Assembly: GCA_030704615.1 (NCBI GenBank)
Contig: CM060731.1
Span: 50,282,001-50,346,000 of the forward strand
Direction of reading: 5' to 3'
From: Takakia lepidozioides
Taxonomy: Eukaryota > Plantae > Bryophyta
Length of the DNA stretch: 64,000 nt
The translations under genes and the position numbers were made by a program. Shown in pieces: positions 6,353 through 36,803 of the stretch; position 1 is the stretch's first letter, and each line of letters begins with the position of its first letter. Below the pieces are notes generated by a model that was not told where the DNA came from, searched no databases, and was given only the letters and a program-made list of their open reading frames with translations.

Positions 6353-6852
6353 NNNNNNNNNNNNNNNNNNNNNNNNNNNNNNNNNNNNNNNNNNNNNNNN
6401 NNNNNNNNNNNNNNNNNNNNNNNNNNNNNNNNNNNNNNNNNNNNNNNNNNNNNNNNNNNNNNNNNNNNNNNNNNNNNNNNNNNNNNNNNNNNNNNNNNNN
6501 NNNNNNNNNNNNNNNNNNNNNNNNNNNNNNNNNNNNNNNNNNNNNNNNNNNNNNNNNNNNNNNNNNNNNNNNNNNNNNNNNNNNNNNNNNNNNNNNNNNN
6601 NNNNNNNNNNNNNNNNNNNNNNNNNNNNNNNNNNNNNNNNNNNNNNNNNNNNNNNNNNNNNNNNNNNNNNNNNNNNNNNNNNNNNNNNNNNNNNNNNNNN
6701 NNNNNNNNNNNNNNNNNNNNNNNNNNNNNNNNNNNNNNNNNNNNNNNNNNNNNNNNNNNNNNNNNNNNNNNNNNNNNNNNNNNNNNNNNNNNNNNNNNNN
6801 NNNNNNNNNNNNNNNNNNNNNNNNNNNNNNNNNNNNNNNNNNNNNNNNNNNN
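6353..6852. other. Assembly gap (500 N)
   Basis: Run of n. ORFs spanning it are artefacts. Confidence 1.
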
Positions 6853-19789: not shown

Positions 19790-22700
19790 ATGCAGGGAAG
19801 AGGGATGGTGAGCTTTGTGGTAGCAGTACTAGTCCTGGAGCTCAGGGTTTGCCAAGCAGTAGTTACTGTACAGGACGACAAGTACCCATCGTGCCACACT
19901 GGCAAGGGCACCTCCAAGCTCTATAACTGTGGCTATAAATACAATCACGAGGGCGACAACCGTGTCCATCTTCCCGCCCACGCCACTCCTACCAGGTACT
20001 CACCTTCTGTTTGTGCTCATACGGATGCTGCCCTGATACTTACTGTTGAATTCCATGTATTACATTGGCCTGTCCAGTCTTCCTCTGACTATTATCCTCC
20101 TCCTTCTTGGTTTTTCGACACGCATATCCCGTTGGTTTTCTCTTGTGTTTCCACTCTCTACATACGTTATCTGTGGTCTCCTGTGGACGCCAATCACTTT
20201 TTTTCTGTCTTCTTCTCCTCTCTAGTCTTTTACATATTTACCGCAAAGTAGGTCCGACTACTGGAGCAACCCTTTGCCAATGGTTATGATCCCCAGTCTG
20301 TTTTGTCCAAGCAGGACGGAACAGATGCATCAGACCAGAACTCATGGAACTTCATGTCAATCAGCCAATCGTACAACATTTAAACTGCAATTCTATGGGG
20401 GGAGATAAATTCTTAGTCCTCCACAGGGAAATAGACAGTGAAGAACATTTCTTCTTTCACAGTTCTCTCTACTTTGAAATACTTGGGAGATTCTTTTGTC
20501 TATTCCTAGATACCAAATCTCTCATAGATCTCTTCCATTGCAGATCAGAAATGCTTCACAGCATATCTGCATCAGGCATGAGACAATCCATTGAACTATA
20601 GTTATTTTTGGGCTGCTTATGGAGGGGCCCCCTTTCTTTCTTGTTTAATACTTTCTCTTTTCCCATAAGCTCTTTGAGCTTTCCATGGACGTTATGAAGT
20701 ATCATTTCATTTCAATTCTGTTCTTCTCTCCAGTCTGCCTTCCCCTTCAGGCCCCTTTCCTACTCTGTCAAAAGGGGGTGCAAGCTGGTCTCTAGCCACA
20801 AGGCATGTAAAGCAAAGTTTAACGTTAATGTAAATGTATGATTGGCACACTACATCATTCTTGCATGGAAAAAGAACCTGGGAAAAGTGATTCATGAGGA
20901 TGCAAGAGGTTGCATAGACTTCTATTCAGAAAAGCTCACTTTGACTTCCTATCACAGGTACATGATTAAATTAAAAAAAGGGGTTCCAGCAAGCAAAGTG
21001 GATGAAATCTGCTTGATTGCAGAGACCAACAAAACAGCATATCCAGGCTACTGCATTTCAAAGTATGTTTGCCTTGCCACGCTTTGATCCTTCCTTCCAA
21101 TCTTGTCCTGTATGCCGACATGCATATAGGATTCTCTTGGCTCTTGTGATTCTCTTTGTTGGTCATGACCAGCACATGGATGCAAGTGCTAACAAGGCTG
21201 CATTCCATTGCCTCTCAAGAATTCAGGTACGAAAAGGTCTGGCTGGGAATGCTGATGGTAATGACAGGACAGAACTTACAACAGCTCCTACTCCAAGAGA
21301 TGGCGGTAATTGAGCATGTGGAGGTGGAAGGCCAGCTGCGTGTCAGCACCATTATTTCACAGATCAGACCAGCCAGCTGGGGGTTGGATCGCATAGACCA
21401 TCAGCCAGGCCAGAACCTGCTGAACCAGATTTACACAGTGAACACAAGTGGTGATGGAGTCCATGTGTATGTCCTTGACACGGTAAGGTGCTCACAAGTT
21501 GATCTCATAAAATAAGATTTCTCCCATACACAACAGCTCAATCGATCTCAAAGACAATTGCAAGAATACATGTGTCTCAAAAGACAGAGTTTGAAGTTTA
21601 TAATGAAACTGCTTCCCAAGGACAGGGAAATCAAAGGATTCAACATCCTCTTGCATACCAATAGTCTCTTGACCATATTGCTCTTTTCCCACTGTCAACC
21701 ACCAGTAGCCCATCTCATATGAACACATGGAGAGGTTGAAGTGAGGTCATAAAGCTCTCGAGGGTGGTGAAGAGACACAAAAAATGAACTTGACTTCCAG
21801 TTTGCAGTTCATCAAATGTTGTGATCAGATGTATATGTACATGGGTTGTTCAATGTACAGGGCATAAGGTGCACACACCAGGAGTTTTGGTACCAAGATG
21901 GAAGACTTGACCAAAACTTGAAGCCTATCAGTAGGTGCCTCACAGGCTTTGATGGTATCGGTGATGGTGTTGGCACCCTCGATTGCAATGGCCATGGTAC
22001 TCATTGTGCAGGTCCTTCCACTTCACCTAAAACCCCTATCCTGTCCCACTTTCTGGCCGATATGTATCAGTGCAGAAGCATGAGGGTTAAAGAGAGAATC
22101 AGCGAGACGTGTTCATGAATGCAAGCAAATTAAGTTCAAAGCACTTGGAGCACATAAACGCAGGAGAAGGAGAAGAGATGCTTGGCTAGACGCATTGGGG
22201 TCTGACCACAGGAAGGATGACTGAAGAGGTGCAAAGAGGCAGAGGCTGCAGGACTACCTAAACTGGTTGTAGGGAGGGAGAGGGGGCAGAATGGGATCGG
22301 AAAGAGTCAGAGGGCCCCACGAGAGAGATATAGCAGGAGAGAGGAAATGAGAGATACAAAGATGCACACATGAAAGGACAGATAAAGGGAACAATCTGAG
22401 GGAAAAAGTGGGGCAGGAGTTGCGTTCTACAGCTGGTGAGAAAGCACATGGAACAATGGACGTGATGCGCTAAGCAGTCTAGGCGCAATGCAGGTATAGT
22501 GGCAGGTGTGCAGAGTGGGGTGGCCAAGAATGCGTTTGTGCATCCTGTGCGTGTCATGTCGTGCGATGGGGCAGGCAGCTTTGGTGCAATCATAGCAGGA
22601 TTGGAGTGGATAAGTATCAACTACATCGCGCCTGCTGTTCTTTCCATGTCCATTGCTGCCACAGCATCCATCAGCATCGACCAAGCTGTCAACCAGCTTG

Positions 22701-25700
22701 TCAACTCCACGGGGATTGTTGTTGTGAGTCCTCTCTGTATCCTCCTTACTGCTCATGTGTCTCCATTCTGATCTTTTTCTATGACACAAGAATGCTTCAA
22801 TTACAGTACTTGAATTTGGCGTACAGAGTTTGCTGTAAAAGCACTGTCATGCCAAGGGTATAGGTCAATGGCATACTCTCAAGTGATACAGATGCCAACT
22901 GCAGGTTGCGGCAGCCGGAAACTTCAAGCAAATTACGTGCAATTACTCACCTGCCCGAGCTACTTCCGCCATTGCTGTGGGATCTTCTAACATTTTGAAT
23001 CTTATGAGTTGGTTTTCAAATTACGGAGTCTGCACAACGATTTTTGCACCTGTGAGTAAGCTGTGAACATCCCTGCTTGTTGATGTAAGAGATCTACCCA
23101 AGGTCAGGTGAGACAATACTAGAGTAAGCAGAGGCGAAAGAGAGTGCATGGAGATGGACACGATTTCTTCTCTCTTCCAATCCAATAAGAACATCTTGTA
23201 TTGAGGAAAACAAAGCGGGATGGAGTGCAGGGGGAGCTGATTGTGAGTTCTTGGAATACCAGCGACATTGCCTTCAACACCCTCTCGGGCACCTCCATGG
23301 CTTGCCCCCATGTGGTACGTTCCATCTCTTTGCAAAAAGTATACAGTGCTATCTGGTTCCCTTCAGCCCAAACAGCCAGTGCCAACAAGATAAAACGCTA
23401 AAATGCTACTCACTGGATACCGTCGTAGACTTCACCTTTCCCCATTGTCGGACTCAAGCAGTTGAATCTGCCACAGTGCCAAAGAGATGCTAGTGAGCTT
23501 GAAAAGATGGAATCTGAGTGGGGAAGATAATAGGGAATGCTTAAAGGCAAGTACAGTTGCAGGTAGGATAGAAAGTGCCACGGAGACAGCATATAGGAAA
23601 GTCCTGGGCAAAAACGAGAACCTAGATTGGCGAGGTCAGGATGTGAAAAACAACGAGGATGAAAGTGCTATGTGTAGGCAGGAGCAGCAGCGCTATTGCT
23701 GGGTCAGAATGGTGATGCACGACCCTCAGATGTACGCGAGGCTCTGTTGGATGTAGCGGAGCCAGCAGCTATAGTAGGGCTGTTCTCAAACACCACAACG
23801 AAGCTCATCAACGTCAATATCAAGCAACCCCCGTTCCAAATCCACCCTCGCTCCTTCTATGAGACATTTGAAGGCACCACCCAAATCAGCACTGTCATGA
23901 TCAAAAGCAAGCCTCTTCAACTCGTTGTGTTGACACCAACGGTCGACCCAACTATTGGTGAGTAGGGTTCACGTTCGCTCAGTGTTGTTATGCAATGCAA
24001 GGATTGTGCACAGAATATCTTGTGCAAAATTTCAAGAGTTCATCAGTGGTTTTGTTAAGAGAGGCCTTCTATCTTTCTCTTCATTACATGAGGTAGGCCT
24101 TTGTGCCCTAGAATATGCATGCATGACACTCATGTGCCATAATGTGGGAGGAAATTATGCAGGCTACTTTCAACCTGCACAACTTTATTTCACAACAGAT
24201 GCGAGCTGGTCGGTTGCCCAATCCATCAAACTTATACTCCTTCTGAGACCAGGTAACTTTCCTTTCCCCTCAGACAGTGACAGCTTCTTAAGCTTACACA
24301 TATGCTGCAGTGCAGTAGGGCTATAGTAAACAAATTTTTCTATCTACACAACTAAATCACAAAAGCAAAAAGTGTTAACCAACAATTCTGTCTGGAAACA
24401 CAAATGGAAACTTGAGGATCAACAGTACTGTGGCGACCAATGGAAAACTTAAAACTGTCTTATTGTATGTCAGCTTTTAAAGGTGAGACTTAGTGATTGT
24501 TGAAGTTTAACCATGAGTGGCAGATTTCTTGGATAAAAGCTCCTTGATTCAATGGGTGTTCACAAGCCAAGATGAACGCTATGACGCTTCTCCAGAAGGC
24601 TACGTCATGTCCTTGGACACAGGTTTGTAAGCCTGCACTTGCTTGAACGTATGCCCAATCATAGATTTGCACCCGCCTATTTTGAAATTCGTCTGTCAAA
24701 GTCACCTTGTCCCGGCAGCTTTTGGGCTTCCTGTTGCTGTTATAGTTCCTTCATTCTCTGTTGCTTTCTCACGAATTTAGCTGGACTCAGTGACGTCTGT
24801 GTGCAGGTGTTTGCAAGATGACAGAGAAAAACCCTTGCGGGCAGACTGCAGACAATCCGAAAATAATACCGGGTGTTCCCTTCTATTACTACGACAACTC
24901 AAATAATTACAAAAACGTGTATGACTCACCGTTCGACTACTGCCACAGCACGGGCCCGGATGTTGTCTTTCAGCACACTCCAATGTCTGACCTGGTGACT
25001 TGCTTTCCTCTTCTAGGTGGCATGTACAGAACATCCTACAATGTTCTCCTGAATCTTTTCTTCCCTTCCTTGCTCCGCATCATTCCACCTTTTTCCCTTT
25101 TGCTTCCCACGGCAGGGTATTGAAGTACTCATCAAGCTACTGAGGGAACTGCACTACTAGGACAGACAATTCTCGTAATAACAGCTCTAGGGATTTGCGC
25201 ATTTATCAAACCCAAAAGCGCTGGAAAGTATCATTTCTTTAGTTTTTCTTTCTAAGGTTAGCGGGGCGGTCAAGAAAGTTCCTATTGTAAGCTGCGAGCA
25301 AAACCAAATTCTGTGGCTGGGAGCATTCAAACTGCACTTGTTTGTACCGGTTAAGCATAGCCAAAACCAATTAGAATGCATGCAAATCTTTATTAGGACA
25401 TCACAGGCGGTCACCTTACCTTTTTTTTGGAAGTATGCTGTACAAAGCAGTCATCAGTGATAAGAATCCCAGAGTCTTTCAGTTACACTTTGTAACCCAA
25501 ATTAACAGGAAAAAATCACTTAATCCATAACAGCATTGACGCAAGGGTGGACTGCTGATGGGGCAGAATGCCACTGTGTCACTATGTGGGCCGAACACCA
25601 ACTTTGATACAACATTGTCTGTGTACGAGAAGGTTCTACTGAACGGAAAATCTCAGCTCAATCGAATTGCCTGCAACGATGACTACTGCAGTGTGCAGTC

Positions 25701-28700
25701 CTTGCTCTCCAAATTACTGCTGAAACGGAATCACACCTATGTCTTTGTGAGTACCTTTAGATACTGGACATGCTCCCTTGATTGCTCCCACTTTCTTGTC
25801 TCCTTTGTAGTAAGTATTACCTTCTGAGACACAGCCGTCCAAGGGCCCCTTAATGGCCTATGTGTAGAGCTGTATGCTCTATCAATTGCAGGATGAAAAA
25901 TTCTCCTTTCCTTCCAATATCTTCTGAGTAAACCCAACAATCCAGACTAGATGAGCGTCATATCTAAGGTTCACAAACTGGGACAGTCAGAGAAGACTCT
26001 TGCTATCAAAGAGTGAGTGAGTTACAAGTTGTGAATACCTTCTTTGCAGACGGAAATGTGGAATCGCACTGGGCAAGGAAAGGTGAGGTAACAATGAATT
26101 AAGGTGTTTGTGTGTGTGCAGATGGTAGATGGCTGGGGAGCTGGAGGTCCCTTTGATTTCAATCTTACTGTGCCTGCAGGTAAGGGACACATGGATCCAG
26201 TTGCGGTTTAGTCCCCCTTTCTGATCTCTTCAAGCAAGGCTATGGGCAGCGTGGCAGGTTGACAGAACTTGAGAGTGGTCTTCTCTCTAGTGAACAAGAC
26301 CTCAAGCAGTTCCTGACAGTCTGAAGCTAGAGTGCATTTATTAAACCATCAATGTCCGAATCCCAGCTGAACTAGATAATGTCACGATCTGCTCAGGGAC
26401 TCAAGTATTGGACTAGGCATGGCATTGCACTTTTCTAGGGTGTAAGCTGGTCCCAAGAAGTGTTCAAGTTAGCGCCTTGTAAGCAGGCAAAGCATGAGAG
26501 TTGGAAAAAGACCCATGGTGAGGGAAGAAACTATCTTTTAGTGTAAGTAAATACAAAAGGATACAAGGCAGGGCTCTGAGGATAACATATAGGTAGAGAG
26601 TCTCAGAGGAACGTTTTATGTAGAGGATGGAAGAAACCCTTGATCGTTGATTTTGGATCTGAGTGTGCAGCAACTGCAACAACAAATAGTGCCACCACGC
26701 GAGCACTCTCAGTTCAATCGCCAGCAATCACAAACTCTGACCAGGATGGATGCACACAATGGATTGGGAAAACATGTGTAGAAAAGCCACCAACGGCGCC
26801 CTGGCAGGACACCTACTTTTGGAGTGCTGCGTCTTGGAGCCCTTGTAACCATGTGTGTGCTGGTGGAATTCAGGTCTGCTTTCCTGCAACTCTGCTTTGT
26901 CTTCTTTGACCTTCCTTCTTAGTCTATCCCACCTCCTCTCCGATTTAAGAGGATGAAGCGTTGCCTAGCAAGGGACAAAGACATGGAAGACACAGTGAGG
27001 GCCTTCCTAACCCACTTTGGTGTACTGCACCACATTCTTGCACACTCTAACTGTTGACTGAAAAAGAGGTCATCTGAGGTTGCTCGCACTTTTGCGTAAG
27101 TCTTGAGGGCAGCCTTTCATTGCTAGCAGATTGCCGCTACATTGATTCTTTGTAATTACGAGCTCTGTCACTTAGTCAAAATCCAAGGGATTCACTATCA
27201 AAGAAGTGGCATATAGTTATGTGTACCGTCCATATGAATCCGCAGAGGGATGGCATGGACAAAAGAGACAGGCAGGCAGGAAAGGGAGTTTTAACCAGGT
27301 GCAAGGGGAGGGCAGCATGCAGTGATCAAATGCTACATGGGAAACTTTTTGGAAGCTCCTGAATTGAACTGTGCTCACCTTCCCCTGCCCCAAGCCACAC
27401 GGGTAAGTCCTCCCCTGTTCATTTACCTGTTATCTCTCCCTAAAAGCAATCCAAGGCCTCTCACATTTTCCCAGTCAGCAGATTAGTCAGACATCTTTAT
27501 GTAGGCCCCAAATCTCTTCAAGAATAATTCCTATGAGAAACACAGATTCCCTTGGCTATGAAGGAGTAAGCCTTCTTTTCAACTCAAAGAACTAACTTAC
27601 GGAAAGATCTAGGAAGCTCAGCTAAACCTACACCAGTTTGGCAAGGGAGAAGCTTCCCAAATGTGTGCACATTGTTGAAGATAATTGTACTTCTGATACA
27701 GTGCCATGGTGTTCTGAGCACTTGTATCCAATTGAAGAGAAGGCACTCTTATCTGCGGTAGAGCAGTTAATTGGTGGACTAATGAGATTAAACTCAAGAT
27801 AGCTGAGAGACGAGCCCTCTATAAAGAGTGTGAATAAGCAATTCCTCCGACCAAAATCCTCATTTAGGACTGGATACATAATGGTGATCTATCATACAAA
27901 CAGAGGTCACATTGTTGCAGGTGTTCATTTTCACATGAACATTTTGCTAAGGTCATCCAAACATTTGAAAATATGGAAAAGCAGGCCTGCATGGATACTG
28001 GATCAGAAGGTGACACCTGACTCTGATTGGTTGGTGCAGAGCTGCAATATGGTGGCATGCAGGTCCTATTCTGTGTATGAGGGATATTGGAGTGAGTGCA
28101 ACCAAACCTGTGGCTCAGGCATCCAGAGGCGGTACAAGCCTGTACTTCGAGCTCTGAGTGCCTATTGGCATGTGTGTCATGACTCAAGGAAATAGGTCCT
28201 AAGAGCTTGCAACACAAACTTGAATTGTAACTCACTGTAGTAATGCTGGACACTTGACATTATGGATATCTTGTCCATAATAACTTAAGACCCTTGTTCA
28301 TGTACTTCATATTGACATTGCTCTGGCATTGATTATCTTTTTTCTGTGCAAGGTATTTGGCCCGCTTAGCTAAACCAGAGGATTAACACTTCCCTTGAGC
28401 AGTACGCAAGTCTAAATCCAATGTATAAACACCGTTCCAATACGTTGGGGATAATTCGTTGATTGACAGAGAGGTGACTTGCATGGATAATTTGGGCAAC
28501 ACGGCTAGCCCTGAAAGTTGTGAGGATCAGCAATACTTTGTGACTGAGAGAGAGTGCAACACTCACGTCTGCAATGCCACCTACTGGGAGGTCCCCAAAT
28601 GGAACTACTGCAACGTTCCATGTTCGGGCGGCAAGCGGTTCCGAGATATTATCTGCCAGTCCAATGGTACTGTTGTTGGTGACGATGTCTGCTCCAGCGT

Positions 28701-31700
28701 CAATGCCCCTGACAATGAGCAGCTCTGCAATAGCCAAGTACAGCTGCCCCTGAGGCCACTCAGCCCCCTCTTCTTCTACTCCCAGTAGCTTAGGGATTTT
28801 TGCTGTTGGTGGATGGGGGGATGCTCGTCATACATGCAAATAATTGTAGCAAAAGTATACATAATAGCAACCCATAGCCATCCAAATTAGGATGCTGCAT
28901 GTGTGCGTACCACTTCTTGAAGGAATGCAGACAGGTGAAACTCAATAGACATGACTATTCCAGTTACTTCACAGAAAATTTGATGTGTTTCAAGCATGAT
29001 GTCACCCCATTGCAAGACACATACCCAATCACATGGAAAATAAATCGAGAAAAAGAAAGAGTTGCTACACAGGGCACAGTGTATTTGATGAGGATGCCTG
29101 CTTGCAGCCATGTCAGACCTATGCATGGCTAGTGGGGCCATGGAATGATGAGTGCCCAGTCGGATGCAACTCCACCACCACTCGCCATGTCGAGGTACCT
29201 CACCTCACTCCCTCCTTTTCTCATGGCTGCGAGTACAAAGTCCCAGGCAAGGTCATAGATTGAAACTGAGCATACCTTAGATGGGTTTAGATGTGTTCAT
29301 AGAGGTTCGCCATGGAGGCAAGTCTAGCTCTCATCCTCCTGTCTCTCTCTCACACTTGCTTGGCTGATCATAAAGCTTGTGGTGCAACTCAGTGTGTAGA
29401 TGGCTGGGGAGAAGGAGTGGAAGACCAGCATTGTGACATTGGAAGTAAACCAGGAAGTACAATGCAGTGTCAGCGCACTGACGTAGCTTGTGACGACTGC
29501 AGGCACAATAATTGCTCTGGAAATGGAGGGTGTATGGTAATATCGTCATTTCTTTGTTCTACCCTGTCCATGGGCCCTGGATGTTTTAAAGTTTTTTTCA
29601 TTCTTTCTCTCCCTTTCTTTTGCATCTTTGAAGCCCTTGGAAATATATCTCTACACATACTTGTCGTTGAATTGCACAGTGGTTTATTGATCTCCTGTAT
29701 AAATGGAGGTGGCATATAGGCTGGAAGGTGTAAGTGCATTGGTCACTGGGAGGGACGCTACTGTGAGACCCTCAAGATATGTGAAGGCCGGCCCGTGGGA
29801 TACCTTCGCAATGGTAGTGTGGGATGCTGCCCATACGAAGCTATTGACAATGAGCAGCACTGCTGTATCACTGCGAATGCCACCCTGACTAGTGTATGTT
29901 CCATACCCAGCCTGCGTCCATTTAAGTTTCCTTTTCCTGCTTTCGCCTTTCTGGTTGTTGACAGCTTATATCTGGCTCGTGATCTTGGGTCGTCTGAATG
30001 GTGCATATGATGGAGTGAAAATACTAGGAACAGAGGTGACATTCTGAGGCACATGCATTTGATATTGGCAGGATGGCTATTGTTGCGAAGGGGGCTACCT
30101 TGATGCATGTGGTGCTTGCAATGGGACTGCTATGTGAGGCCTCACACCTTTGTTAATCCCCTCCCATCTGGTTGTCTCCTGAAATGATGCAATCATAGCT
30201 TACTCATAGGACCATGTTTGAGTAATGCTGACATCCAAAGTCAGGAGAAAACAAACATTTAGTATAAATTATGAAGGGTGACACAATTGAGATGATACTT
30301 TACAACGTCCTTTAAGCTCAAAGAGCTTATGGGACAAGAGAAAGAATCAAACAAGAAAGAGAGTCCCTCCACAAGCAGCCCAGAAACAATCATTGATCTG
30401 TCTAAGATTCAACGACTCGGGCAGATATGCTGTGAAGCAGTTCTGAGCCTTGTAGCGGAACACCTCTATGAGGGATTGGCTATCTCGGAATAGAAAATAG
30501 TTTCTCCCCGGAGCTCGTAATAGAAAGGACATTGAAAGAAGAGATGTTCTTTGGTTTCAATTTCCTTCCTCTCATCTCTACACAAGTGGGGCACAAGCAG
30601 TCAGCGCGCTGCAGGTTGTCCCCCCTATCTGCAGACTGTGGGAGCCCACCCTGAAGACCAAGAATGTCTTCTGATAGAACTGCAGCTTTTTGTAAGATTG
30701 ACTGTTCCAGGTCCGCCTAACATAAAGTTCCATCACCTCCCGTCTGATGTGTCCGTTGTGGGTGTGCTTGGACGAAATTTCCGGACTTCTGTAATTTGTG
30801 GAAGTAGGGAAGCAACATTGCGGGCTGGAGCTGCCAGCCATTTGGTAGGGCTTGCAACCTTCTCAGGAGATAGTAAGCGGAAGATGGCCTAGACACAATC
30901 AAATTCAGCACGTACAATTGTGATGGTGTTGTACCTCTAGCCCCAAGCATTTCTTGGAGGAAATACGATTGAAAGTGGTTCGAGGTTTCTCTCCCACCGG
31001 GAAACGGGGACCTCTGGGGCCCCGAAACTTGCCGCCATAAGTGGGCAGCAGGGGTGATAACCGAGTCAAATAGCCACTTTTTGGTGGGGGAGTGGCGCGG
31101 ATGGATTTGTTTGCATTTGGCCTGAAGGTGTATAGAGGCAGTCTTTCCTGGTCGATGCAAACTGAAATTTGGGTGCATGGATAACCAGACCAGGTATGGT
31201 ACTCATGACCTCAATCTCTTGCTGGTTGAAGAGGAATATCTGATCAGCATGGCAATCAAAGACCATGGTCTTGGTTTTGCTGAGGTTGACCTGCAGCCCT
31301 TAGGCCTTGGAGAACTCTTCTAGGAGGCGCAGATTGTATTGGCATCCAGGCAGCCCCACTCTAATGAGTTTTTGGCAATGTAGCCCTCCAATGCATCTGT
31401 AGAAATGGTGCTTTATGTAGAGAAAATGCATCTGTAGAGAAAATGAAATGAAACGGTGCCTTATGACGTCCGTGGGAAGCTCATAAGCTTATGGGACAAA
31501 ATGGAAGAAAACATGAGAGAAGAAACAAAAACTTTATAACGTCTGGGTAAAGCTCAAGGAGCTAACTGAAAAGAGAAAATGCATGGACAGAAAAGTGGAG
31601 CCCCAACAACCAGCCACCACAACCATGAATGACAATTTGGAGGTTGTGGAAATGGCAGTTTTTATCCTTGTACTGGAAACTCTCTGTCACGCCATGGCCG

Positions 31701-34700
31701 TCTCTGAAAAGGCAAAAGTAGTGGCCCTGGATATCAAGGTAGAGAAGACAGTGACAGAAGAATTCAGTCTCAATCTCCAGCCTGTCTTGTTAGCGCAAGC
31801 AAGACGAAGGTTTTCAGCATGCTGCAGACTGCCCTCTTCCAGTCTTGATCCTGAGACTACGTGGGTCCACTCTGAAACATCCCAATGCCCCTGAGAACAG
31901 TACTTGGGCTGTAAGATTCTGTTCCAAATAGAAATAGTGAATGGTGTCGCTTATTTCGAGGTCTGCATGACAGTTTTTTCTGTTCTTCTCAGGCTTTGAA
32001 AAGATTTCCAGATGCCTTCGGTTTTGAGGCTGAAGAGAGGTTGCGCCGGCTGAAGAAAGATTCCAAAATTGTGCATACAATTGCTTCAGAAAAAGCTAGG
32101 GGTGTGAGCGCTGGTGGTGGGAGACAGCTAAACAGTTATTAATGGAAAGGTTGTGTTGCGTGAGGGAAGGATGGCAGATCACTAGACTTTCATAGCAAGT
32201 GCTGCAGCACCATCCGAGATGAGAAAGGCATATGCTGCAACAGTGGATTTTTGGATGAATGCCTCATTTGTGATGGCGATAGCACCAGCTGTGCTGCCAA
32301 CATTAGGATCAGCCTCATCTTCAATTCCACCATAGAGATACCTCACAACTCCTCCGCTCAATGGAAGGAGTTCATCCTCTACTTCAGTGGTGATGTAAAT
32401 TTCTAGAACTTCCAACACAACTCCTTTCCTCTTCCACTGCGTCCCAGGGGCCTCAAGGATGCAATTTATTTCTTAGTTATGATGGATACCATTTAATTTC
32501 TCGCTCTTCTCTCTCACCCTTTCTTAGTTTCTTGTCCTTGGACAACCAGCATGTAGCCCAGTGGTAATGGGCACATACCACGTTGGATGTGGTTGTGGGT
32601 TCAAACCACGGTCTGGTGTGTCATTAAGGTGTCCACCTTTCAGCTGGAAGGCAGTAGCCCTTGTGGTGAAGAGACACCATAATTTATGCTTCCTTCTTGC
32701 GAGCAATAGTTTTATGTTTGGCTCTGGTTTTGTTTCCTCTCTCATGTTTTTTTCCCATTTTGTCCCATAAGCTCTATGAGCTTTCCGCAGATGTTATAAA
32801 GTACCATTTCATCTCATTCTTGCCCCATAAGCTCTTTCAGCTTTCCGCGGACATATAAAATTTCATTTCTTTTCATTTCTCTTGCTTTTGGGCTGCTTGT
32901 GGGTTTAGCTGTTTTTTGGCTCTGGTTTTGTTTCCTCTCTCATGTTTTTTCCATTTTGTCCCATAAGCTCTTTTGAGCTTTCCGTGGACGTTATAAAGTA
33001 CCATTTCGTTTCATTTCTCTCATTCTTGTTTCTTTCTCTCACTGAATCTTCCATTATGAGGATCAGAAATGCTTGGCAGCTTTTCTGCACAAAGCTTTGA
33101 CCCTAGACAATCCCTTGAGCAGTAGTTGCTTTTGGGTTGCTTCTGGCTTCTCTCCGTGTCTTTTATTCTTTCTTGTTTCTTGCTTTCCTTTTGTTCCATA
33201 AGCTCTTTGAGCTTTCTGCGGACGTTATAAAGTTCCATTTCATTTCATTTCATTTCGCTTGTCCCATAAGCTCCTTGATCTTTCTGCGGACATTTTAAGT
33301 ACCACTTCATTTCATTTCTCTTTCTGTCCTTTGGAGCTGTTCCTATTACATGTCTCTTGGGCCCTTTGGGTTTCCTGCACCCGTAATTATTTCATTCTTT
33401 CTTTCCTTCTCAGATCAGTGATTTCTTGCAGCTTACCTGCATCGGAGCCTCCGGCTTCTGGACTAGTGAACAGCAGTCTAGCCAGTAGCTTTAGTGGCCT
33501 GGTGGAGCAGGTTGCTCTTGTTTCTTTGTTTGCCCATATGCTTTTGAAGCTTTTGGGAAGTTGCCTTCTCTAAATTAGCCAGTAGCTTTAGTGGCCTAGT
33601 GGAGCAGGTTGTTCTTTGTTTCTTTGTTTGGCCATATGCTTTCAAAGCTTTTGCGGAGTTGCCTTCTCTAGATGGCTGTCATAATTGTCCTTTTTGTACA
33701 TAATAAATTGTTGTCGCCTGCCTCTTTTAGAACCCATATATTACTTCATCACATCTGCTCTCCTCCATACCTCTTTAAATCCCACTGTTGAAGTGCAGGT
33801 GGGTGACAAGCTGGGGGTGTCACCAGAGGCCTTACTTCTTACAGCAGTGCAACTGTCAGACACTTACATAGGCAACTGTGGAGATGCTTTGGACCGTGAA
33901 GAGGGCTGTCTTGTGGATGGAATTCCGGCAGTCACTGGCATCTTCAACTTCACTGTGCTCCCTATCCCTGGGGTAACATTGAAGTCCCAAATATGATTCA
34001 TGTTCGTCTGGCTTTGTGACCAATAGGCATGTCATGCCACGGCAGCAAGCATGTGGTCACCGTTACATGACCTTCAATTTTCTATAACATGGACGAACTT
34101 CATAACATTTTGAGCTTGAGGCCACATAGTGCATGTTCTGAGAAGATACAATGTTACTTATCCAGCTCATCAACACAAGCTAATGTCCTTGCATGTCTGG
34201 CACAGGGACAACTACAAGACATGAGCATCAAGAAACATGAGATTGCCGAACAACTTTCCTCATTGGGTGATCAAGAGGAGGTTTGTCTCCCCTTTGTAGA
34301 TGACAAATGGATGATTTACACAAACACACAGTTTTGGGATAAACTGAAGTATAGGTCACTCACCACTCTAGCAATATCAAAAAGCACTTGCCATTGTGGG
34401 GGGATCATTGCCACTGCATGTGTTACACAATCCTATGTGCTCATCTAATACTTAACTTGATGTCTAAAGTGATTTATGAACTATTGAACTCACCATCAAA
34501 GCAGAATTCCAATGTTGTTAGCCTGATCCTGGCTTCCCTTCGCACAGGCATTCTAGAGAAAAGCAAAGCACACTCGAGTAGACTTGCAAACAGGTGTGGC
34601 AGAGAACTGATCCCACGGAAATGGTGAACCTTAGGCCTGGGACAACCTGCACTAATTTGAGAAATCGCTGTGGTGCAGGGTTTCGTGGTCAACACGTCAG

Positions 34701-36803
34701 TACATGCCGAAAGAGCTGGCATCTGTGGGAATGGCATGTGTGAGCAAGGAGAGCGATGTGATCAAATGGGGAAGAGTGCGACTAAAATGGAAAGTAGCAG
34801 TTGCTGTTTGAAAGACTGCCCGTTTGTATCGCACACTTGTCCCATCCCACCTAACGGCCCACGTGCCAGCAGGTCATGTGCTGGCAATGGTTTGTGTCTA
34901 GATGCAAGTGGCCAATGCAGCTGCTTCCTAGGTGCCCAGCTTATCCTCAGTACTAGCATCTAGGATTACTATTCTTCTAAAGACTACACTATTAATGCAT
35001 TGAGGGGGACAATAGGTCGTGCATATTTCCCACACAGAAAGCATGCCCAAAGAGTGCAAGTTGCTGAACAGTATGGACCGACCAAACTACCACAAGTGTC
35101 TCATCACTTCTGTTCACCGTTCAAGCATGCAGAATTAGAGAGGGTCACAACTTCCTTTTAACTATTAGAAACAACAGTACTCTTCAGCTTGTACATTAGA
35201 AGAGTCAGTAACCAAAGTTGGCCAGGTCTAATGAGTGCCTGAGGGAGGAAGGGAGAGGGGTATGGCTGTGTGACCGAACAGAGTGAAGGGTCCACAGGAT
35301 ACAGGGGCATCGATTGTCAGCAGTGCACATTTGGGTGGAAATCCTCAACTAATGGGAGCTGCATCAAATTGGCCAATGATGTGGAGTACGCAAAGATGGG
35401 CTTGTCAGCACTGCCTGACATGTCCTGGAAGGATGACCGAGACTCAGAGGGCTTCTCCAGAATTGCAGGCCTGGCCCTTGCAGCTGTAACAGGATGTGGG
35501 GTCCTTCTATGTGTTGTGACCTTTCTCTACATGCACTATTGGAATCCGCAGGAAGTCATCAGAAGCTGCCTATACAGAGAGCCCAGTCAAAGAGAACACT
35601 CTCAAGGTATGTCCAACATTAGAAGCTTCAATATTCACTCGTCTCACAGTCTACGTAGAACACCCAGTACAATCAATCACATATAATCATGTGCATAGAA
35701 GGAGCACATGATACGTTTTGTGGCTGCTCGGACAGGCCTCCTAATCAGCCCATCAAATTCATGGTCCTTTACTTTTGAGTTCACTGAAACGTACAAATAC
35801 AAGACTTAAATCAAGAAGTGTATTGCTTTTGCAATTGAGGATTTCATTTGTCAACGTGCTCTGTGCATTGTACACATGGTGGTGTGCAGATGAAGTTGAG
35901 CACCAAGATGAGAGGCTGAGTAGTGCGGGTAAGTCGCACAGCCAGGAGCCAGCAGAGGCAACAGCAGCCAAGCATGGCCAAAGATCTTTGCTGGAGGCAA
36001 GCACAAGTACTCAGAAACAAAGCAGCCACAGACAAGAAACTGATGCGCCACGTACTGCAGTGCTGCCTGACTGTGCAACTGGATGGCGCAAATCCCTTCT
36101 TCTTGGGCAAGAGGGTGGTATTACAGGTTGGCGAAAGTCGTTAGTTGGGAAACAGCAAGTGGAATATGGCTTACTAGAAGATGCAACTCATGATGGTGTA
36201 CAGTCAGTGCAGAAGCCCAAGCCTGCGCACGATGATGTTTGGTCCTCCTCACCAACCACCCCTCCCTCGAACTGGCTAACCTCTTTTGCAGAAGATACTG
36301 AAGGCATTCCTCTTAAGCCACTACATACCTCTCCACCACAAGATACACGGCTCATTCTGCAAACAGCAGACACTCGATCCCAACCACAAACCACCAGCTC
36401 CCATTTGCAAGAGGTTTGGTCTCAACCCCAGCCATCATCTTCACGACAAGATCTTTGGTCGTCCCATGAGCCACATTCTACAGCTACACCACATGGGACT
36501 CACTCATTTCCTCTACGTCTCATCCCTCCGCCACAGGCTCACATGAGCTCCTCTTCACAACGTCCCATCTCGATACTTGGACCACCCACCCCTAGGGTCT
36601 TATCACCTCCTCCGTCTTTGCAAACTGATATGCGGGCTAGATCAAACCCTTTGTCTTCATCTCCTTTGCAATATCCAGCTGAATCTCAAGTCCGACCCGC
36701 CACTGAATCTCTTTGGCCACGCCACCATGAGCCTTCCTCTCCTCCCTTAACTACCACACCCTCCTCCCCTCCATCTCTGTCCGAGATGTCTGATTTGATG
36801 TAG
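19790..36803 (+). CDS. Type I membrane proteinase-K-like S8 serine protease with PPC-like, TSP1, EGF and Cys-rich modules (~1710 aa, 27 exons)
   Basis: Exons: 19790-19995, 20958-21062, 21227-21482, 21861-22011, 22494-22723, 22905-23051, 23231-23314, 23678-23957, 24163-24252, 24524-24622, 24807-24994, 25567-25746, 26122-26179, 26671-26873, 27316-27402, 28040-28131, 28470-28737, 29108-29194, 29393-29536, 29720-29893, 30072-30133, 32178-32394, 33799-33972, 34206-34280, 34679-34931, 35298-35606, 35890-36803. All GT-AG and phase-compatible, total 5133 nt. Motifs WGLDRID, VLDTG, DCNGHGTHCAG, AAGN, SGTSMACPHVAG. TSP1-type WSPC/WSEC repeats. TM IAGLALAAVTGCGVLLCVVTFLYM. Confidence 0.85.
20420..20720 (+). 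mobile_element. LINE family A 3' fragment in intron 1 of the protease gene
   Basis: EEHFFFHSSLYFEILGRFFCLF plus the same stem-loop and CATTT tail. Confidence 0.7.
30290..31350 (-). mobile_element. LINE family A RT C-terminal fragment (intronic)
   Basis: LQVNLSKTKTMVF and KWLFDSVITP, with the family-A 3' stem-loop at ~30305-30340 on the minus strand. Confidence 0.75.
31440..32090 (-). mobile_element. Second degenerate LINE family A fragment (intronic)
   Basis: FRVDPRSLRIKTGR and ETEFFCHCLLYLDIQGHYFCLF, with two 3'-end stem-loops at 31441-31565. Confidence 0.65.
32540..32705 (+). mobile_element. tRNA-derived SINE copy
   Basis: A box TAGCCCAGTGG and B box GGTTCAAACC. Highly similar to the 63487 copy. 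Confidence 0.8.
32710..33670 (+). repeat. Tandem array of LINE family A 3' ends
   Basis: cccataagctc...agcttt units at ~32762, 32822, 32958, 33193 and 33261, plus a ~97-bp duplicated degenerate pair at 33479/33576. Confidence 0.8.

Follow-up and report, generated by a model that had tools for sequence, protein, structure and literature searches.

The stretch of DNA analysed here, called the window below, comprises 64,000 nucleotides of contig CM060731.1 of Takakia lepidozioides (Bryophyta; assembly GCA_030704615.1, positions 50,282,001 to 50,346,000). Its plus strand carries, at window positions 19790–36803, a gene for a large subtilase (peptidase family S8) with an adhesive stalk and a predicted membrane anchor. 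We rebuilt this gene as a 26-exon model in which all introns are of the GT-AG type. The coding frame comprises 5040 nt and 1679 amino acids without internal stops; it starts with the ATG at 19790, and its stop codon ends at 36803. Splice sites were taken from RNA joints where present, and elsewhere GT/AG pairs were picked by orthologue guidance. Ten junctions, from 23957 to 29108, are backed by spliced RNA contigs. A tblastn search of family proteins on the window gave collinear matches from 19802 to 35515, and the collinearity with full-length orthologues from Calypogeia, Marchantia, Sphagnum, Physcomitrium and Closterium holds exon by exon. An open 5-kb frame over 26 exons, together with conserved splice phases and conserved cysteine patterns, is far beyond chance.

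The encoded protein comprises a signal peptide, a weakly I9-like prodomain, an S8 domain, an Ig-like sandwich, a jelly roll resembling PPC and collagen-binding domains, four TSP1 repeats, an EGF module, three CC...CxxCxG units, an SEA-like α/β domain, a second EGF module, a single transmembrane (TM) helix and a Pro/Ser/Thr-rich tail of 327 residues. It contains 87 cysteines, 62 of which lie within residues 740–1330. Single-exon Pfam matches for S8 and EGF remain below the cut-off because introns split these domains; full-length orthologues therefore served as proxies for domain scans, searches and fold models. The first-pass annotation of this locus, made from the letters alone, had described one membrane-anchored subtilase of the proteinase K/aqualysin type with a full D/H/S triad, a WGLDRID motif, two probable β-rich modules and about four TSP1-like repeats. 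All of these elements are found in the rebuilt gene, in a frame that is intact from start to stop codon, although the 27 exons counted at that time are now 26.

The protease part is encoded by the first eight exons. Exon 1 (19790–19995) contains the start codon, the signal peptide with a hydrophobic stretch at residues 5–28 and the N-terminal region; it was assigned from the open reading frame (ORF), from hydrophobicity and by tblastn with residues 2–67 of the Calypogeia protein P0008. Exon 2 (20958–21062, orthologue-guided splicing) provides the first half of the prodomain (RYMIKLKK...). Exon 3 (21227–21482) contributes the end of the prodomain, the WGLDRID motif and the start of the S8 domain with the catalytic Asp188 (21477–21479), and exon 4 (21861–22011) the catalytic His234 within HGTH (21993–21995); both were located by orthologue tblastn and the frame model. 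The S8 core is encoded by exon 5 (22494–22723), which has a weak Pfam S8 match of its own and family orthologues as its top phmmer matches. The oxyanion asparagine (AAAGN) is found in exon 6 (22905–23051; orthologue tblastn and splice model) and the catalytic Ser387 (23294–23296, GTSMA) in exon 7 (23231–23314; Pfam scan of the exon and splice model). Exon 8 (23678–23957) completes the S8 domain and starts the Ig-like β-sandwich, as judged by the RNA joint 23957|24163 and the family alignment. In frame, WGLDRI is located at residue 155, DTG at 188, HGTH at 234 and GTSMA at 385. The catalytic triad is thus intact in the order Asp188, His234, Ser387, and the oxyanion asparagine is also present.

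The S8 exons of the window are 56–69% identical to those of the land-plant lineages compared, Sphagnum being the nearest, and the full-length orthologues carry Peptidase_S8 at about 1e-36. For the S8 region of orthologue P0151, the top solved structures were 8c4z, 5wsl, aqualysin (4dzt) and 2b6n, with E-values from 6e-72 to 5e-60. PCSK9 (about 1e-40), fungal proteinase K (about 1e-36 to 1e-40) and subtilisins (about 1e-31) matched more weakly. The distance from His234 to Ser387 is 153 residues in a gap-free alignment to proteinase K-type enzymes, which leaves no PA insert, and no PA domain was observed in Pfam scans of exons and orthologues. By sequence comparison, we assign the S8 domain to the proteinase K/aqualysin type and not to the PA-containing SBT1-5 type. 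For the prodomain, a profile-profile comparison (hhalign) with I9-bearing bacterial relatives resulted in a probability of 48% and an E-value of 1.8e-4, with 75 columns in register. Pfam I9 had no match on the window exons or on the orthologue N-terminus, and a phmmer search of the N-terminal region against the PDB matched the WGLDRID part only. The I9-like prodomain that had been proposed is thus retained on a weak profile match, but not as a Pfam I9 domain.

The Ig-like sandwich continues through exon 9 (24163–24252) to exon 10 (24524–24622), both placed by RNA joints and the alignment. The jelly roll begins in exon 11 (24807–24994), whose donor at 24994 is the only one that fits the orthologue peptides, continues in exon 12 (25567–25746, ACNDDYC motif; RNA joints and alignment) and ends in exon 13 (26122–26179, RNA joints). 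AlphaFold models were built on the Marchantia orthologue. The model of the region following the S8 domain has a mean predicted local distance difference test score (pLDDT) of 65. Its first sub-domain (pLDDT 75–94) is an Ig-like sandwich of the PapD/MSP/ASH type with a fold Z-score of about 10. The second sub-domain (model residues 142–272) reached VIA Z-scores of 9.3 for ColH, 9.2 and 8.5 for ColG and 8.0 for the PPC domain of B. anthracis, at a pLDDT of only 46–75; the PPC family PF04151 itself had no match in the Pfam scan of the Marchantia orthologue. In this model the two β-rich modules are real.

The stalk starts in exon 14 (26671–26873), which encodes a linker and the first half of TSP1 repeat 1 (RNA joints, weak Pfam TSP1_ADAMTS match). 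The second half of repeat 1 follows in exon 15 (27316–27402; acceptor 27316 supported by a loose contig end and by orthologue peptides). Repeat 2 has one CxxTCG site. Exon 16 (28040–28131) provides the first half of repeat 2 (WSECNQTCGSG; Pfam TSP_1 at 2.8e-5, above cut-off), and exon 17 (28470–28737) the end of repeat 2 together with repeat 3; both are backed by RNA joints. Repeat 4 begins in exon 18 (29108–29194; RNA joint 28737|29108 in both runs described below, orthologue tblastn) and ends in exon 19 (29393–29536), where the first EGF module starts (orthologue tblastn, EGF matches in orthologues). The repeats are of the ADAMTS type (PF19030): exon 17 matches this family at 2e-12, above cut-off, and four stretches in the Marchantia orthologue match it at 5.8e-34. 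In BLASTP, the TSP1 array aligned with those of ADAMTS7 at 1e-15.

Exon 20 (29720–29893, family alignment) completes the first EGF module and contains the first CC unit. The second CC unit (CC..LDACGACNG) is encoded by exon 21 (30072–30133), which was identified by the alignment and by tblastn with Sphagnum residues 917–937 at 81% identity. Exon 22 (32196–32389) holds the third unit (CC..LDECLICDGDSTSC) and the start of the SEA-like domain; an acceptor at 32178 is also possible for this exon, and either site keeps the frame. The third unit was placed by the alignment and resembles the end of the Cys-rich region of ADAMTS7 over a motif of 15 residues (9/15 identical, E-value 0.012 in one comparison). 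We take this similarity as a lead and not as proof. Structure comparisons of the CC units gave no fold match, and neither ADAM_spacer1 nor ADAMTS_CR matched in the orthologue scans.

The SEA-like α/β domain extends through exon 23 (33794–33972), again located by the alignment. For this part of the second model (P0151 residues 1116–1240, pLDDT 61–78; 72.6 for the second model), the best VIA matches include SEA domains, with Z-scores of 7.0 for the SEA region of Gpr126 and 5.4–5.9 for HAT, MUC16 and TMPRSS6, values below 8 being in the background range of this tool. Foldseek found nothing significant for the Cys-rich/SEA-like model, and all ESM Atlas rows stayed below a TM-score of 0.5. An autocleavage motif of the GSVVV type (G|SVVV) was absent from the aligned region of every family member. 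Exon 24 (34679–34931) encodes a Cys-rich region and the second EGF module, for which EGF_2 and EGF_Teneurin matches are weak on the exon and above cut-off in Marchantia.

Exon 25 (35298–35606) contains the end of this EGF module, the juxtamembrane part, the TM helix (about 35459–35540) and the start of the cytosolic tail. The single TM helix, at about residues 1327–1352, was identified by hydrophobicity and is kept in the orthologues; liverworts, Physcomitrium and Selaginella all retain a signal peptide together with one C-terminal TM helix. The predicted topology is that of a type I membrane protein, as expected for the membrane-anchored protease that had been postulated. Exon 26 (35890–36803), defined by its ORF, encodes the remainder of the tail and the stop codon. 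Residues 1420–1679 consist of Pro, Ser and Thr to 40%, and the exon has no Pfam match. The Pro/Ser/Thr-rich tail proposed in the first-pass annotation is indeed present, but the exon is not conserved in orthologues, where the tail varies from 16 (Physcomitrium) to 484 residues.

In order to find relatives, the 77 residues of S8 exon 5 were compared by phmmer with 1.84 billion representative sequences. This yielded 3634 matches, the best of which are 58–74% identical and include long proteins; Pfam scans of three long top matches returned S8 and TSP1_ADAMTS, and EGF in some. Further members were found by word searches with full-length orthologues and by name look-ups. The family thus comprises members from Zygnematophyceae (two strains of Closterium, Mesotaenium), liverworts (Calypogeia, Marchantia, two Riccia species), mosses (several Sphagnum species, Physcomitrium, Ceratodon), the lycophyte Diphasiastrum and the ferns Ceratopteris (two loci) and Adiantum. 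One Marchantia locus (Mp3g13090 = MARPO_0050s0101) is among the matches, and those from Physcomitrium are isoforms of a single locus (LOC112284461, at least six annotated isoforms). All members are annotated as hypothetical or uncharacterised. Full-length orthologues have the S8 domain, four TSP1_ADAMTS repeats and EGF in common. Fused full-length models exist in four liverworts, Physcomitrium, Sphagnum species other than S. jensenii, and Closterium, which has the same S8+TSP1 architecture; from Mesotaenium an S8 orthologue was obtained. No member was detected in seed plants in three database searches, the reach of which was limited by the length windows of the word searches, the word index and the 50% clustering of the representative library.

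Several public gene models cover only part of this architecture. The annotation of Sphagnum jensenii splits the locus into adjacent models of 466 residues with S8 and 782 residues with EGF (CAK9883110/CAK9883111). Fern models of 689–728 residues span 72–84 kb, and the fern and Diphasiastrum models together span 72–173 kb; they end after the jelly roll or within the first TSP1 repeat, which is reached in Diphasiastrum. Since public models are often split, shortened or divided into isoforms, the architecture is hidden in surveys that rely on annotation. In Selaginella, the protein SELMODRAFT_425768 starts with a signal peptide of its own and contains TSP1, EGF and CC units, a further EGF module and a TM helix; no S8 exons were found in the 4.3 kb upstream of its gene (S. 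moellendorffii GL377642.1). From its sequence, this gene appears to be a naturally protease-less version of the family.

Expression of the Takakia gene was followed with contigs from two runs (X1, X2) of the same organism, placed on positions 23190–29180. An X1 contig of 2440 nt spans S8 exon 6 to exon 17 and, through the joint 28737|29108, enters exon 18 and extends past 29180. Its pieces are 23272–23956, 24162–24249, 24521–24619, 24804–24984, 25567–25746, 26122–26174, 26666–26870, 27320–27401, 28039–28130 and 28469–28737, and it continues onward from 29108. Each stretch removed between these pieces is bounded by GT and AG. Such joints identify the material as complementary DNA (cDNA).

Whether the locus consists of two neighbouring genes, one for a secreted S8 protease and one for a TSP1/EGF membrane protein, is decided mainly by this contig. 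The split and shortened public annotations mentioned above, the stalk-only gene of Selaginella with its own signal peptide and an X1 donor at 24984, with which the frame would stop shortly behind the protease cassette, all speak for such a misreading of two genes as one. However, the contig joins the C-terminal part of the S8 domain in exon 8, via exons 9–13, to the TSP1 exons, with GT-AG introns removed throughout, and a single transcript of this kind contradicts two separate genes. The frame is continuous with the productive splice sites, fused full-length orthologue models exist, and the TSP1 part in the window lacks a start codon and signal peptide of its own at its beginning. We consider two genes very improbable; the check by which the first-pass annotation could have been overturned in favour of two genes came out for one.

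The RNA observed at the locus derives mostly from unproductive isoforms. Intron 7 (23315–23677), which contains an in-frame stop soon after Ser387, is retained in contigs from X1 (contiguous piece 23272–23956) and X2 (23272–23573), and no spliced joint is listed for it. In both runs, position ~23030 in exon 6 is joined straight to 23272 inside exon 7. This skip of 242 nt (23031–23272) keeps the frame and deletes 21 residues adjoining Ser387; its ends are CT..GC, or GC..AG if read from the minus strand. A deletion allele, a non-canonical splice or an artefact could explain it. The X1 contig furthermore uses donor 24984 instead of the productive 24994 and acceptor 27323 instead of the productive 27316, each of which breaks the frame. 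A loose end of X2 at 26873 shows the productive acceptor 27316, and the orthologue peptides are compatible only with the productive sites 24994 and 27316.

These isoforms could mean that the locus is transcribed without giving a working protease, as a decaying or protease-dead copy whose transcripts are mostly substrates of nonsense-mediated decay. Every RNA contig over the C-terminal half of the S8 domain is indeed defective, by retention of intron 7 and the 242-nt skip in both runs and by the two frame shifts in X1. Against this stands a genomic frame that stays open through all 26 exons (5040 nt), with canonical sites; the triad, the oxyanion asparagine and 87 cysteines are kept, and the S8 exons have 56–69% identity to those of the land-plant lineages compared. 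The productive acceptor is seen in X2; contigs keep a single path at each bubble and omit less frequent variants and do not show that the productive form is absent, and the Physcomitrium orthologue is likewise a multi-isoform gene. A defunct copy is for these reasons improbable. Alternative splicing in the S8 half may tune the amount of catalytically competent protein.

Some further features of the introns and flanks were noted. Within intron 15, the X1 word depth at 27590–27989 is 140–690, compared with about 19 for the gene. The abundant contigs over this intron share only about 27790–27830 with the window, have loose ends on both sides and gave no Rfam match; the deep stretch resembles a small piece of some abundant repeat or transcript. 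A family of repeats of ~70 nt, resembling miniature inverted-repeat transposable elements or short interspersed nuclear elements, has one copy in intron 1 (20652–20723) and a cluster of four to five in intron 22 (32754–33325); this family accounts for numerous similar short ORFs (...ELSADVIKYHFISF...). No intronic RNAs were found when the whole gene was scanned with Rfam, and a Pfam scan of intronic ORFs gave no meaningful match. Upstream of the gene, the assembly has a gap of 500 N (6353–6852).

The descent of the protease was analyzed with an IQ-TREE tree of 81 S8 domains. The window sequence is not itself a row of this tree, and Closterium Y58 and Chara P0020 were removed by the domain-length filter. 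Thirteen family members lie on one side of a branch with support of 99 in the Shimodaira–Hasegawa-like approximate likelihood ratio test (SH-aLRT). Closterium and Mesotaenium are sister to the land plants (SH-aLRT 99), within which moss, fern and liverwort groups are found. The green algae that come next, beside the streptophyte clade, are Cymbomonas and Asterochloris. This topology fits vertical descent of the S8 sequences from the common ancestor of Zygnematophyceae and embryophytes or an earlier one, in agreement with the earlier suggestion that the gene was retained from algal ancestors.

A recent horizontal transfer from bacteria or a protist, or a contaminant, would have some basis in the word searches, where streptophytes are followed by S8-fn3 proteases of Actinomycetota (39–50% identity in S8), the nearest relatives beyond green plants and algae, and then by the green alga Cymbomonas. 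The combination of S8, Ig-like and PPC domains is moreover typical of bacteria. The window copy, however, has 25 spliceosomal introns in a plant genomic context, and the S8 tree shows a single streptophyte clade that branches largely by species group, with Cymbomonas and Asterochloris alongside. The tree excludes recent transfer or contamination; an explanation of this kind is extremely improbable and, for any recent event, effectively refuted. The protease cassette may have come from bacteria long ago, in early Archaeplastida. The gene family is real and anciently conserved, and represents a hitherto undescribed architecture built from known parts.

The distribution also bears on the proposal that the protein is used by motile sperm. 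Members were found in bryophytes, a lycophyte and ferns and none was detected in seed plants, which would suit a sperm or fertilisation protein kept only where swimming sperm persist. Gamete and cell adhesion in animals and protists often involves TSP1 and EGF modules, which also speaks for such a role. The orthologues in Closterium and Mesotaenium argue against a sperm-specific function, since Zygnematophyceae have no flagellate cells and have lost flagellar genes such as BLD10 (bioRxiv 10.1101/2021.07.25.453666). Mp3g13090 is not listed in the accessible part of the supplements of the sperm-gene screen in the same study. Ginkgo and cycads, which have motile sperm, are not among the matches, although no direct test of their absence was made. 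A protein of motile sperm or fertilisation is thus an improbable reading, and the suggested link to motile sperm is not upheld; a role in other water-dependent sexual contact or in gametophyte surface biology may still apply.

Among known systems, the N-terminal part most closely resembles the proteinase K/aqualysin subtilases (S8A), some bacterial members of which carry a C-terminal PPC domain. Both have the D-H-S motifs and the WGLDRID stretch with which the mature enzyme begins; the weakly I9-like propeptide and, in the fold model, the β-sandwich and PPC/collagen-binding-like fold after the catalytic domain would be further parallels. Aqualysin-1, the Meiothermus keratinase and the proteinase K-like enzymes of Serratia and Vibrio are the best structure matches to the S8 domain of the family. 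These enzymes are soluble, secreted proteins of 280–700 residues, whereas the protein described here runs on for about 600 residues of TSP1, EGF, Cys-rich and SEA-like modules before its TM helix and cytosolic tail. PCSK9, which represents the proteinase K branch in animals, matches at 1e-40 with an alignment that reaches its prodomain; it has a Cys/His-rich domain, without TSP1, EGF or TM segment. In PC5B, an S8 domain occurs together with Cys-rich repeats and a TM helix. PC5B and PACE4 belong, however, to the kexin branch (S8B) with a P-domain, unlike the family described here.

The ADAMTS proteases share with this family the arrangement of a protease followed by ADAMTS-type TSP1 repeats (PF19030) and the motif D-x-C-x-x-C-x-G-D-G-[ST]-x-C, which in ADAMTS is located at the end of the Cys-rich region. 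In ADAMTS, the TSP1 repeats fix the enzyme to the matrix. The catalytic domain of ADAMTS is an M12B zinc protease, whereas an S8 serine protease is found here, and reprolysin (M12B) had no match in the Pfam scans of exons and orthologues. The family moreover has no disintegrin-like domain and no detectable spacer, and is predicted to be membrane-anchored, whereas ADAMTS enzymes are secreted. The combination of a protease with TSP1 repeats evidently arose independently of ADAMTS. Type II transmembrane serine proteases (matriptase, enteropeptidase, HAT, TMPRSS6) are likewise membrane-anchored extracellular enzymes with a stem of adhesion modules; their SEA domain would have a counterpart in the weakly assigned SEA-like domain of the family. 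They have an S1 chymotrypsin fold at the C-terminal tip of a type II protein, in contrast to the S8 domain at the N-terminal tip of a putative type I protein. By the nature of its catalytic domain, the family belongs to neither ADAMTS nor the membrane-anchored serine proteases.

Plant subtilase biology is built on the secreted, PA-containing SBT1-5 clade. With SBT1-5 (tomato SBT3, cucumisin), SBT6 and SBT7, the family shares an S8 protease with a propeptide, and its Ig-like domain superposes on the C-terminal Fn3-like domain of tomato SBT3 (3i6s, Z 8.8). It differs from SBT1-5 in the absence of a PA insert and in an S8 domain from the proteinase K branch. In Xu et al. 2019 (PMC6713707), proteinase K homologues from Marchantia and Physcomitrella form a cluster of their own, and the type is stated to be missing from vascular plants; the architecture was not described. 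Our sequence matches in ferns and Diphasiastrum contradict this absence from vascular plants. A literature search on the architecture and on the identifiers Mp3g13090, Mapoly0050s0101, LOC112284461, PHYPA_010254 and SELMODRAFT_425768 found no paper.

Based on these comparisons we propose that the gene probably encodes a type I protease of the cell surface or wall matrix, an S8 analogue of ADAMTS and of the membrane-anchored serine proteases. The following steps are derived from the known behaviour of the component families. A bacterial-style cassette of signal peptide, I9-like propeptide, S8, Ig-like and PPC/collagen-binding-like domains would be mounted at the N-terminus of a eukaryotic matrix-binding stalk, followed by the TM helix and a disordered cytosolic tail. 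The zymogen would fold with the help of its propeptide, which would then be removed autocatalytically in the secretory pathway. The enzyme would be displayed on the plasma membrane and extend into the wall or matrix. Glycan or protein ligands could be bound there by the TSP1, EGF and PPC-like modules. In that position it might cleave wall or surface proteins locally, either as a sheddase or as a matrix remodeller. The role in wall or mucilage remodelling that was suggested in the first-pass annotation is pure inference. What we observe directly is the anatomy of the gene, a single transcript, conservation from Zygnematophyceae to ferns and intact catalytic residues.

Several points weigh against a surface protease. 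A fully productive messenger RNA was not observed, since the RNA shows the retained intron 7, two frame-breaking sites and the in-frame skip of 21 residues. The RNA nature of both runs was only guessed by the index, and their status as cDNA rests on the GT-AG joints. Selaginella keeps a stalk without a protease, so that the main function of the family may lie in the stalk. The assignments of the prodomain, from sequence profiles, and of the SEA-like domain, from a fold model, are weak, and the AlphaFold models represent the Marchantia orthologue and not the window protein. Finally, the localisation and function of all family members are predictions.

To our knowledge, TSP1 and EGF modules, which are hallmarks of animal and protist extracellular matrices, are hardly known from land plants. 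A bolder scenario, which we put forward only tentatively and regard as unlikely in its entirety, is that streptophytes independently built their own ADAMTS analogue, a membrane-tethered S8 protease on a TSP1/EGF stalk. It would act in the matrix biology of water-dependent cell-cell contact, such as conjugation, fertilisation or the adhesion of free-living gametophyte tissue, and would have been lost, or not been found, in seed plants. Its catalysis would be switched by regulated splicing, with retention of intron 7 and use of the sites 24984 and 27323 giving protease-dead or truncated forms.

The putative surface protease of Takakia adds to plant subtilase biology a proteinase K-type S8 domain joined to an adhesive stalk of animal-like modules and to a predicted membrane anchor. 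Proteinase K-type subtilases persist in ferns and lycophytes, and the whole architecture is at least as old as the last ancestor in common with Zygnematophyceae; in seed plants it was not found by the searches made here. The protease-less version in Selaginella and the unproductive isoforms may serve as natural experiments that separate the function of the stalk from catalysis. The family thus offers a genetically tractable candidate for studying how walled streptophyte cells process their surface and matrix proteins, and what the seed-plant line may have given up.

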